Part shown: positions 12,632 through 55,995 of the stretch, in pieces | Layout of the letters: each line of letters begins with the position of its first letter | Position numbering within the stretch: the stretch's first letter is position 1 | Source: Blastocystis sp. Blastoise | Taxonomy: Eukaryota > Protista > Bigyra: Opalinata | Reading direction: 5' to 3' | Assembly (NCBI GenBank): GCA_039096225.1 | Contig: JBBPEB010000028.1 | Span: forward strand, 248,001 to 312,000 | DNA: 64,000 nucleotides | The notes under the pieces: model-generated | Seen by the model: the letters and a program-made list of their open reading frames with translations, nothing else | What the model was told of the DNA's origin: nothing | Databases searched by the model: none | Translations under genes and position numbers: made by a program

Positions 12632-12640
12632 AACTACTGG
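12632..12640 (+). repeat. Left 9-bp target-site duplication AACTACTGG
   Basis: Directly precedes the left TIR. An identical 9-mer directly follows the right TIR (55987-55995). Confidence 0.95.
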
Positions 12641-13926
12641 GAGAACTCGACCTGCCACGTTCATTTTCTAAAAGTTGCCGTTACGTAGTTCAAAAGTGAT
12701 GTTCGTCATACGCACCAAGTTTGGTTCATCCAATTATTTTCTATATTTTATGATACAATCATTAAATACTTTTTTAATAAAAAATATATAATAAATATTA
12801 AAATATAAATTTTTATGATATATAACCTATAGTTGATTTTTAAATATTTAAAAAATACATTTTATGACTTTCTTTAAATACTCTATATAGTTGTTTTTTT
12901 ATATTTTCATTAAAACTATAAAATTAGCATTAAACTGAAGCATTATTATATAAATAATTGTAAGCATGACTTGATAGAAACATAAAAGCGTTTTATAGCA
13001 ATTATATTGCAAAAATACTAACTATTTAACTACTTTCATTATAATGCACTGTAATTCCGTTATTTATTTATATTTTCGAGCTATTTTTGAGTACATAAAT
13101 GTATAGCGTTTAATACATAGTAATTTGTTATAAGTCAACAATTATTTAAAGAAATGAAAGAGTAATGTACACATTTATATTAATAACAGAGATTCAACTT
13201 GAAACTGATATCCTGTATTATTCATCACTATTTATAGTTTATGAATGAATTACAAAAGAAAAAACGAATGTTACAATTAATTAATTGTTAATGCATTGAA
13301 GTATAATTATATTTTATAACAGAATCAAAGAAATAAACACTTTAAATAAATAAATAAATTATATATATGTTTTAAAATAAGATATTAAAGATAATATTTA
13401 GAATTTTTATTTAAAGTATAGATTCAATGATTAAATGATTTAAAACTGATAATAATGGTATTCTAAGTGATATACAGCTAGAAATAATAAGATATATTTA
13501 GAATGAATGGAATGAATACTCTTAAAGTATTATAAAACAATTCTAAAGATATCCTATTGCAATCTAGATGATCATAGAAACGCATGATTATAAAATTATG
13601 CTTTTAATATAATATTAAGATTATAAAATTAAGATGTGTTGATTTTTTGTCTAATAAATTATTATATCAATTACCTAACACTTCAAAAGTATGCAGAAGG
13701 ATCATTAGCATCCTTAATTAATCCAGAATTGAGTAAATGAAAATATAAGCTAATGCAATTGTAATGTTGTGTCTACTTCATTTTGATAAAATATTAATAT
13801 CACTTTTAAGTAGATAGCCTATAGATATAACTCATGAGTGAATATCAACGTATAATATTGAAATATGACTGAAATAATACAAATTCTAACAAAGAAAAAA
13901 AAATCTTAAAAAATCTTTAAAAAAAT

Positions 13927-13992
13927 ACTTAAGTCAGGATTTGAACCTGAAGATTGTCTAGAATGACCCTCTCTTGCCATTCAAGCTTAAGT
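13927..13992 (-). ncRNA. tRNA-like cloverleaf with B-box (left TIR copy)
   Basis: ACTTAAG-CTTG AATGG CAAG-AGAGGGTC ATTCTA GACAATCT-TCAGG TTCAAAT CCTGA-CTTAAGT, followed by ATTTTTTT. Not a canonical tRNA. Confidence 0.55.
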
Positions 13993-14952
13993 AAAGGTGA
14001 TATACTGCATAAATATATATATTATTTAAAATAACAACAATAAATATTACATTCCCAATTGCCATTCTTAGACTTTACATACATATGTCTTTAATGTTAA
14101 AGCCAAATAATAATTCATATTACATAGAATAAAATTGGGTATCTATATGATTCTATAATCAGGTTATCATAATAATATTATTAATAATAAATATATATAT
14201 ATATATACTTATTTTAAAACCATTCTCACATTTATTATCTTTTATTTTATCAATAACTATATAATAATATATATATTATTTCTATTATTATTACAATCAT
14301 CTAAAAACTCTATTTCTAAATATTTTGGGCTTACATTTAAAAACAAATAGATAATCAGTATCATATAATCTATATATGTATAATAATAATAATATAATGA
14401 TGATACTAATAATAATAAATATACTAAATTATTATATATGTTAACATTAATCAGATTTAATAGCAATAAATATAATAATTTTTTGATGAATAATAATAAT
14501 AATAATTTGGTTAATGTAATACTATAACTATGTATCGTTCTGTATATGTATTCAATAATAATTGTTGTAAAGGGTTTCGATGAGTACTTTTAGATAAGAA
14601 GATCGAAGGAGTAGATATATACTATATATATATATATATATAAACTTTCAATTATTATAGGTAATTATAATATATATATACAGTAACATTAGCAAAATGT
14701 TCGATATAATTTATGCATAAATTGTTCATCAAGTTAAAAAAAAATATTTCTCCGAAAAATAACCATCATTTATATATAATGTATTATTACTATTTCATAT
14801 TCTATATATAATAGTATAAATAATTAAAATGATTCAAAAAAGAATACACTTATCTATCATACAACATTAAATAAATAAACATATATAAAGAAGATAAATA
14901 ATAATAATATATAATAATCTATATAATAATTTATATATATATATACATATAC

Positions 14953-53300: not shown

Positions 53301-53674
53301 AACTATTAATACTATATATATATAGTTATCAATAGGTATTGGATATATTGGTTTATCATTAATTGATAAAACGCCAGAAGAATTATTATATGTATATTTC
53401 TATAATATTCTTGGGAATTATATATATTCAAAACAACAACATAATTACTCATTGTCTATTGATTCTTTACAAGTATATATATATATATATAATTATTAAA
53501 TAGATTGATGTTCAAACACCGACTCCCTTGTTCCCATCGATGGTTTATATTAATAGAAAGAGTATTCAGTCTATTTCAGAAGGTAAAAATGATTCTGAAA
53601 TGTATCGAATGATTAATCGCAAATGTGAATGTTCAGGATGTGGAATAGAATTCAAACAAAATGTACCATTTTAC
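47347..53674 (+). pseudogene. VPS13: Captured internal VPS13 fragment (VAB/SHR-BD repeats, PH-like insert, start of C-terminal region); truncated at both ends
   Basis: IYPGECIPIPL, PAYIIHNNLPLPLNY, YMLTNYTSMPL, YPQYYLHNTT, WSFSYPFKIE, LRNYCYFPIQYAQ, GIGYIGLSLIDKTPEELLY...IDSLQIDVQTPTPLFP. Introns are retained. Confidence 0.78.
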
Positions 53675-55986
53675 GTATATGTATATATATATATAAATTA
53701 TTATATAGATTATTATATATTATTATTATTTATCTTCTTTATATATGTTTATTTATTTAATGTTGTATGATAGATAAGTGTATTCTTTTTTGAATCATTT
53801 TAATTATTTATACTATTATATATAGAATATGAAATAGTAATAATACATTATATATAAATGATGGTTATTTTTCGGAGAAATATTTTTTTTTAACTTGATG
53901 AACAATTTATGCATAAATTATATCGAACATTTTGCTAATGTTACTGTATATATATATTATAATTACCTATAATAATTGAAAGTTTATATATATATATATA
54001 TATAGTATATATCTACTCCTTCGATCTTCTTATCTAAAAGTACTCATCGAAACCCTTTACAACAATTATTATTGAATACATATACAGAACGATACATAGT
54101 TATAGTATTACATTAACCAAATTATTATTATTATTATTCATCAAAAAATTATTATATTTATTGCTATTAAATCTGATTAATGTTAACATATATAATAATT
54201 TAGTATATTTATTATTATTAGTATCATCATTATATTATTATTATTATACATATATAGATTATATGATACTGATTATCTATTTGTTTTTAAATGTAAGCCC
54301 AAAATATTTAGAAATAGAGTTTTTAGATGATTGTAATAATAATAGAAATAATATATATATTATTATATAGTTATTGATAAAATAAAAGATAATAAATGTG
54401 AGAATGGTTTTAAAATAAGTATATATATATATATATTTATTATTAATAATATTATTATGATAACCTGATTATAGAATCATATAGATACCCAATTTTATTC
54501 TATGTAATATGAATTATTATTTGGCTTTAACATTAAAGACATATGTATGTAAAGTCTAAGAATGGCAATTGGGAATGTAATATTTATTGTTGTTATTTTA
54601 AATAATATATATATTTATGCAGTATATCACCTTTACTTAAGCTTGAATGGCAAGAGAGGGTCATTCTAGACAATCTTCAGGTTCAAATCCTGACTTAAGT
54701 ATTTTTTTAAAGATTTTTTAAGATTTTTTTTTCTTTGTTAGAATTTGTATTATTTCAGTCATATTTCAATATTATACGTTGATATTCACTCATGAGTTAT
54801 ATCTATAGGCTATCTACTTAAAAGTGATATTAATATTTTATCAAAATGAAGTAGACACAACATTGCAATTGCATTAGCTTATATTTTCATTTACTCAATT
54901 CTGGATTAATTAAGGATGCTAATGATCCTTCTGCATACTTTTGAAGTGTTAGGTAATTGATATAATAATTTATTAGACAAAAAATCAACACATCTTAATT
55001 TTATAATCTTAATATTATATTAAAAGCATAATTTTATAATCATGCGTTTCTATGATCATCTAGATTGCAATAGGATATCTTTAGAATTGTTTTATAATAC
55101 TTTAAGAGTATTCATTCCATTCATTCTAAATATATCTTATTATTTCTAGCTGTATATCACTTAGAATACCATTATTATCAGTTTTAAATCATTTAATCAT
55201 TGAATCTATACTTTAAATAAAAATTCTAAATATTATCTTTAATATCTTATTTTAAAACATATATATAATTTATTTATTTATTTAAAGTGTTTATTTCTTT
55301 GATTCTGTTATAAAATATAATTATACTTCAATGCATTAACAATTAATTAATTGTAACATTCGTTTTTTCTTTTGTAATTCATTCATAAACTATAAATAGT
55401 GATGAATAATACAGGATATCAGTTTCAAGTTGAATCTCTGTTATTAATATAAATGTGTACATTACTCTTTCATTTCTTTAAATAATTGTTGACTTATAAC
55501 AAATTACTATGTATTAAACGCTATACATTTATGTACTCAAAAATAGCTCGAAAATATAAATAAATAACGGAATTACAGTGCATTATAATGAAAGTAGTTA
55601 AATAGTTAGTATTTTTGCAATATAATTGCTATAAAACGCTTTTATGTTTCTATCAAGTCATGCTTACAATTATTTATATAATAATGCTTCAGTTTAATGC
55701 TAATTTTATAGTTTTAATGAAAATATAAAAAAACAACTATATAGAGTATTTAAAGAAAGTCATAAAATGTATTTTTTAAATATTTAAAAATCAACTATAG
55801 GTTATATATCATAAAAATTTATATTTTAATATTTATTATATATTTTTTATTAAAAAAGTATTTAATGATTGTATCATAAAATATAGAAAATAATTGGATG
55901 AACCAAACTTGGTGCGTATGACGAACATCACTTTTGAACTACGTAACGGCAACTTTTAGAAAATGAACGTGGCAGGTCGAGTTCTC
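53474..55986 (-). repeat. Right terminal inverted repeat (2,513 bp)
   Basis: Reverse complement of 12641-15153. The inner boundary lies in an intronic (TA)n tract. Confidence 0.95.
54635..54700 (+). ncRNA. tRNA-like cloverleaf with B-box (right TIR copy)
   Basis: Same 66-nt sequence as 13927-13992: GGTTCAAATCC B-box, 7-bp closing stem and T7 just downstream. Confidence 0.55.
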
Positions 55987-55995
55987 AACTACTGG
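55987..55995 (+). repeat. Right 9-bp target-site duplication AACTACTGG
   Basis: Identical to 12632-12640. Confidence 0.95.

Follow-up and report, generated by a model that had tools for sequence, protein, structure and literature searches.

A candidate cargo-loaded Mutator-like transposon of at least 28 kb in the protist Blastocystis sp. Blastoise

The 64-kb stretch of Blastocystis sp. Blastoise DNA analysed here (contig JBBPEB010000028.1, positions 248,001 to 312,000; hereafter the window) contains an element of 43,346 bp with long terminal inverted repeats (TIRs, or arms) and a Mutator-type transposase gene. The left arm (12641..15153, + strand, inner border in a (TA)n tract) and the right arm (53474..55986, - strand) are reverse complements over 2,513 bp with a single mismatch at 13762 and no gap, as an earlier note made from the sequence of the window had claimed. 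The 9-mer AACTACTGG abuts both ends of the element exactly, at 12632..12640 and 55987..55995 (both +), and these are its only two occurrences in the 64 kb, so the perfect 9-bp target site duplication described in that note stands; the chance of the 9-mer match at the local base composition is p ~1.4e-6. Its total length also holds, as does its estimate of about 28 kb without Helitrons: three Helitron-like inserts account for ~15.0 kb and leave ~28.3 kb. Four traits of the Mutator superfamily are present, namely the 9-bp duplication (8-10 bp in the superfamily), long TIRs, a transposase with a DDE triad and CxxH motif, and a SWIM finger.

The DNA on each side of the element is unique and the two flanks differ, making a fold-back artefact of assembly unlikely. 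The left flank carries the first exon of an Rpb7/Rpc25-family gene (12335..12550, - strand, outside the element; Pfam E 3e-17), with its start codon ~80-90 bp from the insertion, and on the right another gene terminates a few hundred bases from the element. The genome assembly comprises 33.34 Mb in 34 contigs with a G+C content of ~22%. We infer that the host is a tortoise Blastocystis and that the assembly matches Rus-B, a tortoise isolate with a Nanopore long-read assembly and a diploid signal (PMC12129017).

At the core of the element lies a minus-strand gene, starting at 45846, in which a transposase and a Ulp1 domain appear to be fused. Exons 1-6 of the transposase occupy 43186..45846, the gene continues between inserts at 38905-38102 and 31559-31200, and its 3' part, with the Ulp1 (Peptidase_C48) domain, lies at 24960..26973. 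The spliced transposase model has seven exons with GT-AG introns and is open for at least 693 codons under the standard code; a ciliate-type genetic code was considered and is unneeded. The model contains the catalytic motifs D229, D293, CxxH (314-317) and E410, as well as a CxC...CxH SWIM finger at 502-515; the tryptophan expected ahead of the catalytic E is seemingly F. Database searches were run exon by exon, and the joined model was compared locally only. The Pfam SWIM match (E 0.004) falls just short of the cut-off, and the MULE (Mutator-like element) profile, matched by single exons, is also below it (E 0.01). A search of 1.84 billion cluster representatives returned two proteins only, both sisters from the same genome (P0001 and P0002); a PDB sequence search gave no match, nor did a length-filtered search for homologous proteins with the catalytic exon. 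The sister proteins, which are 46-47% identical to the spliced model, are annotated as Transposase_mut + MULE + Peptidase_C48 and pass the Pfam thresholds for Transposase_mut and Peptidase_C48. The DDE and SWIM transposase that the earlier note placed inside the element is thus upheld by the motifs in the spliced model and by the sister proteins. Once the inserts are removed, the window from 45846 to ~24960 is colinear, from start through Ulp1, with the gene of a sister family in this genome (family B, to which P0002 belongs). This colinearity and the sister identity place the core, as an ordinary representative, in a transposase-Ulp1 Mutator lineage of this genome.

The three inserts interrupting this gene, which correspond to the nested Helitrons recognized before, are most readily classed as non-autonomous Helitron-like elements. 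H1 (26974..31199, - strand) begins with a 5' TC, ends with a 3' hairpin followed by CTTG, and sits at the last base of an exon, one base before the splice donor, where it cuts Ulp1 off from the transposase. H2 (31589..38100, + strand; 5' end between 31560 and 31589) ends with a hairpin and CTAG, lies in an intron, and carries its own captured exons at ~35280-36500. H3 (38913..43155, + strand) lies in a 37-nt intron and ends with a hairpin and CTTG; it is missing the C of the 5' TC, and the CTTG of H1 and H3 is a variant of CTRR. The inserts sit in A^T without target duplication and have many dispersed copies, H1 and H3 belonging to one dispersed family (90% alike) and H2 to another. No Rep/helicase frame was seen in the inserts, although no profile search for one was made. 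The inner 4.3-kb inverted repeat was considered as a second TIR pair and rejected, being formed by two independent copies, H1 and H3, of the dispersed family. Each of the three has copies elsewhere whose identity rounds to 100%, and bit scores suggest that the nearest copy diverges by ~1 difference in 3,500 for H3 and by ~0.3% for H1 and H2. These values are of the same order as the difference between the arms (0.04%), so they do not tell whether the Helitrons inserted before or after the element jumped. The closest copies of H1 (C29 and C5:391 kb) and of H2 (C7) match 11-29 bases past the expected 5' end, and the extra matched bases (31199-31213 and 31560-31588) look like the element's own site sequence; H1 and H2 may be the parents of those copies, in which case they might be older than the jump and the unit that moved would come close to 43 kb.

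The reading frame is open through the DDE and SWIM motifs and is interrupted by H1 ahead of Ulp1. Among RNA contigs covering 43170-49100, no long piece fell on any transposase exon, although such contigs show presence and cannot prove silence. With H1 splitting the transposase from the Ulp1 frame, the element is probably crippled or silent now.

DNA derived from host genes lies on both sides of the core. On the left, a captured intron-containing fragment of an unassigned gene (15666..18258, - strand; 93-96% to G000:C29:659208-662103) is followed by a decayed M1 aminopeptidase fragment (18233..20642, - strand; 75-92% to G000:C17:638727-641319; Pfam E 3e-11) and by captured exons at 20634..21353 (- strand) that match the downstream part of three VPS13-like loci at 66-75% identity and probably represent the C-terminal part of VPS13. 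Next to these lies a single-copy decayed stretch without family assignment (21380..24960), which is coding-like and apparently intronless on the minus strand; Pfam returned no match for it or for two of the left cargo pieces. On the right, a captured VPS13-like fragment with introns (47328..54112, + strand; 91-96% to loci on contigs C16, C34 and C3; Pfam VPS13_VAB match) extends into the right arm. All three loci begin to match at 47328, where a transcript contig from another animal's gut diverges into different sequence on the 5' side, and the fragment is therefore cut at its 5' end. The cargo retains introns, its joins lie in introns rich in AT microsatellites, and its pieces point outward. 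No host gene is carried whole: the host cargo announced in the earlier note is host-derived DNA indeed, but it consists of gene fragments. The matching loci on C1, C16, C34, C3, C17 and C29 were judged from coordinates and scores.

On the VPS13-like exons, the RNA contigs give a small number of short matches, and most of these carry differences that point to paralogs. One transcript contig, obtained from a separate gut sample, is identical to the cargo exon at 48823-48945, and another has 6 differences; the first may derive from this copy or from an identical paralog exon. The genome holds at least three close VPS13-like paralogs (G000:C16:194-8179, C34:903971-912257 and C3:409241-423119), of which one lies at a contig end and one contains insertions of 4 kb and 1.6 kb.

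The exact end of the element occurs in the genome at only two places, both of them here, and no other complete copy bounded by TIRs and a target duplication was found. The earlier description of a transposon family was not borne out. A second copy without the tip does exist: 12754..20691 (+ strand) matches G000:C1:322032-329926 (7.9 kb) at 95-97%. The C1 copy is missing the outer 113 bp, contains the VPS13-like exon in left-arm context at 100%, and stops near a cargo join. We interpret it either as what is left of a sister insertion or as the sequence from which this arm derives; in both cases, end plus cargo has changed place. A plain host donor at C1 is less likely, given that part of the Mutator end is present there and that the exon lies in left-arm context. 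The contig of the element also carries, at a distance of 90 kb, an old solo end that is 77% identical to 12658-12879.

Six other transposase loci of this type are present in the genome at 35-43%; for two of them the surrounding 100 kb was read, and four were judged from coordinates and scores. The family-B copy on C33 (G000:C33:752170-760065) measures 7,896 bp and has 705-bp arms that start with GAGAACT and a 9-bp duplication; the copy on C26 (C26:976576-1012685) shares these ends and is flanked by a separate 9-bp duplication. The arms of the element described here begin with the same 7 bases, and its ends and those of family B agree in the first ~10 bases only. In family C (G000:C2:180884-193750 and C4:63598-76147), mirror-symmetric hits around the transposase indicate long arms and a length of at least 12.9 kb, and its predicted protein (P0001) ends in a captured Cse1/exportin fragment. 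Between copies, the sister families show 99% conservation, and they have hence been recently active. Related Mutator ends bound elements of ~1.1, 4.3-4.8, 7.9, 11.0 and 36.1 kb.

The smallest of these sizes come from two small families whose paired ends are related to the Mutator terminus, one of ~1.07 kb (G000:C24:751310-752382, C30:155176-156248 and C34:812550-813622) and one of 4.3-4.8 kb (C2:788642-792948, C22:260364-265180 and C25:971036-975293). The family-B copy on C26 contains a nested 28.2-kb element (G000:C26:980480-1008674) whose inverted ends measure 717 bp (98.9%). Among its ~20 long intronless frames is one that has a P-loop ATPase-like motif (a weak P-loop match only in Pfam), and an incomplete copy of the H1/H3 family also lies within it. 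The C33 copy of family B represents the empty site for this nested element, which shows no clear duplication and looks like an integrated virus-like (Polinton-like) element.

The length of the arms given in the earlier note is correct, but the arms are composite. Judging from the resemblance to the solo end, the Mutator-type end would be confined to the outer ~240 bp of each arm (12641-~12880 in the left arm, + strand). The middle of the left arm (12880-14515) has no assignment, and 14515-15153 consists of a VPS13-like exon and intron. This inner ~640 bp continues the right-hand VPS13-like gene, and the exon alone is 95-96% identical to the three host loci, the same level as the adjoining cargo, which argues for copying from right to left. 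The exon would thus have arrived with the right cargo and then been copied onto the left arm, the copy ending in the (TA)n tract. An apparent identity step at the arm border (81% in the arm versus 95% in the cargo) was dropped as an effect of introns and gaps, given the value for the exon alone. Extended TIRs that incorporate acquired sequence are already known in plants (PMC3310237). We found neither an inner terminus within the arms nor free copies of the arms, as looked for in a composite of the foldback or Ising type. Three similar short tRNA-like sequences lie at 13925-13990 in the arm and at 33530-33600 and 37870-37935, both in H2; a scan with ARAGORN called no tRNA, these stretches included.

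How such arms might be maintained is indicated by family B. The arms of the C33 and C26 copies differ at 4 positions, and all four differences are common to both arms of their own copy; one difference only is private to a single arm, and the interiors differ by 0.66%. The two arms of a family-B copy thus seem to evolve together, at transposition or later, with a possible contribution from polishing artefacts. This co-evolution supplies a mechanism for the long arm here, and because mutations are shared within each copy, arm identity is no safe clock for the jump. Divergence from the closest matches in the genome amounts to 3-34% for the cargo, as compared to 0.04% between the arms, and cargo capture is therefore much older than the last homogenisation of the arms. 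The earlier proposal that the whole 43 kb inserted recently was accordingly not confirmed, given arm homogenisation within copies of the sister family and the uncertain order of the Helitrons and the jump.

Taken together, we favor the reading that a Mutator already loaded with cargo, and at least 28 kb long, jumped as a whole, with a probability of roughly 0.6. The basic unit of the lineage would be ~8 kb, with TIRs around one long transposase-Ulp1 gene. It would have grown on both sides of the gene by capture of host gene pieces at the DNA level, most likely because the repair of breaks made by the transposase switched templates at microsatellite introns. Copying from arm to arm would then have lengthened the inverted repeat toward the interior, to 2.5 kb, so that it includes the VPS13-like exon and stops in (TA)n; here the structure is directly visible, and the copying is the most plausible way to it. 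A Mutator transposase, most probably that of the element itself, would have cut out the loaded element, of 28 kb or more, and inserted it just upstream of the Rpc25-like gene, generating the 9-bp duplication; the insertion of the three Helitron-like elements into the transposase gene would be about equally recent. The ends and the duplication are present in the sequence; we infer the travel of the whole load and the action of its own transposase.

In favor of a whole jump are the exact arms and duplication, the open transposase with all motifs, the colinear core and the shared GAGAACT terminus, together with the loaded left-arm copy on C1 and the family-C protein with its captured Cse1 fragment. 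Several points weigh against it. There is only one complete copy; the transposase start lies 10 kb from the nearer end, whereas in family B it abuts the arm; owing to homogenisation, the identity of the arms may not tell when the element jumped; the RNA contigs, which show presence and not absence, contain no transposase transcript; and the transposase acting on these ends is a putative one. A broader claim is more tentative. It is possible, if somewhat doubtful, that this lineage has lost the usual size limit through routine arm-to-arm copying during transposition, building kilobase arms from host exons and moving 28-43 kb, Helitrons included, in one cut-and-paste event.

The single complete copy and the homogenised arms also speak for growth of the element in place. 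A smaller Mutator (~8-15 kb) would have inserted long ago and made the duplication, cargo would have been added by repeated abortive excision and gap repair under ongoing arm conversion, and the 28 kb would never have moved as one. The 18 unmutated bases of the duplication would be compatible with a few per cent divergence, and family-B copies do enlarge in situ (7.9, 11.0 and 36.1 kb, the last via a nested insertion). On the other hand, the 95-97% copy of the loaded left arm on another contig indicates that at least 8 kb of end plus cargo has moved, and the ends and duplication are perfect even though the cargo is several per cent diverged from its donors. We regard growth in place as unlikely on balance, while taking it as the most serious alternative.

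The distance of the transposase gene from both ends could instead mean that the ends are those of a non-autonomous Mutator family and were moved by a family-B or family-C transposase, with the internal transposase-Ulp1 gene as a passenger without ends of its own. The 99% conservation that marks the sister families as recently active, and the RNA contigs, in which a transcript of this transposase was not seen, agree with mobilisation in trans. Remnants of older ends around the core were looked for, and none were seen; nor were free small copies of the end. The end and the transposase are both single-copy and co-located, and the ends share just those ~10 terminal bases with family B. Such mobilisation is improbable in our view. 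Polishing of an assembly can level near-identical repeats, and a fold-back or mis-joined repeat would also yield inverted arms. An artefact of this kind is nevertheless very improbable, considering the different unique flanks, the exact duplication, the 38 kb of interior that is not mirrored, and the same type of end in sister elements; moreover, an assembly fitting this genome was built from Nanopore long reads (PMC12129017). The favored reading of a loaded element that jumped whole would have several consequences. A natural Mutator of at least 28 kb would shift the size limit, the largest element in the lists we compared being 17.7 kb (PMC2528002), and gene shuffling in the style of Pack-MULEs would extend to a stramenopile gut protist. 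Family B shows, in a clean natural setting, the paired arms of a copy changing in concert, and thereby opens the poorly understood steps of TIR extension and cargo capture to testing.

We found nothing relevant in the literature on Blastocystis with Mutator, and the genome paper of Rus-B has no description of such elements (PMC12129017). Each ingredient of the element is known from other systems; new are its size, the combination of its own transposase with a heavy cargo, and the host group. It is one complete copy and not yet a family, its cargo is fragmentary, and any function of the cargo and any activity of the element are putative. According to reviews, eukaryotic cut-and-paste elements with captured genes rarely exceed 10 kb (PMC11162782, PMC6431247). 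The autonomous protist and fungal MULEs EMULE-Ei1, TvMULE1-4, Hop and Mutyl have the same MULE DDE transposase, inverted ends and 9-bp-type duplication, but they measure 2.1-7.4 kb, have ends of 20-187 bp and carry no cargo (PMC2725143), as compared to 28-43 kb, 2.5-kb arms and cargo here. Pack-MULEs likewise enclose pieces of several host genes, introns included, within Mutator ends, with donors elsewhere in the genome; most measure 1-2 kb, few exceed 10 kb, and their transposase is supplied in trans (PMC6431247, PMC11162782, PMC3310237), whereas this element has its own transposase gene and ~17 kb of non-core interior, in a stramenopile. Large DNA between long inverted ends, or moved by a Mutator-type transposase, is also found in the Ising TE and in TnGBS. 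The Ising TE, however, consists of native chromosomal DNA flanked by two complete foldback elements, in contrast to a mosaic of fragments with arms that are not free elements, and TnGBS is bacterial and conjugative (PMC6431247). Families B and C share the transposase-Ulp1 gene (46-47%), at 7.9-11 kb with 705-bp arms in B and at least 12.9 kb in C. Ulp1 domains are known in the Kaonashi/VANDAL elements and the grapevine Mutavines (PMC13317346, PMC2528002), and large size is shared with these plant MULEs as well, of which many have no TIRs; a difference is that Ulp1 and transposase appear to form a single fused gene in the Blastocystis element. Mutavine-1 reaches 17.7 kb and Mutavine-18 16.2 kb, with 710 bp as the longest TIR listed (PMC2528002); the Helitron-free size of the Blastocystis element is ~1.6x that of the largest listed Mutavine.

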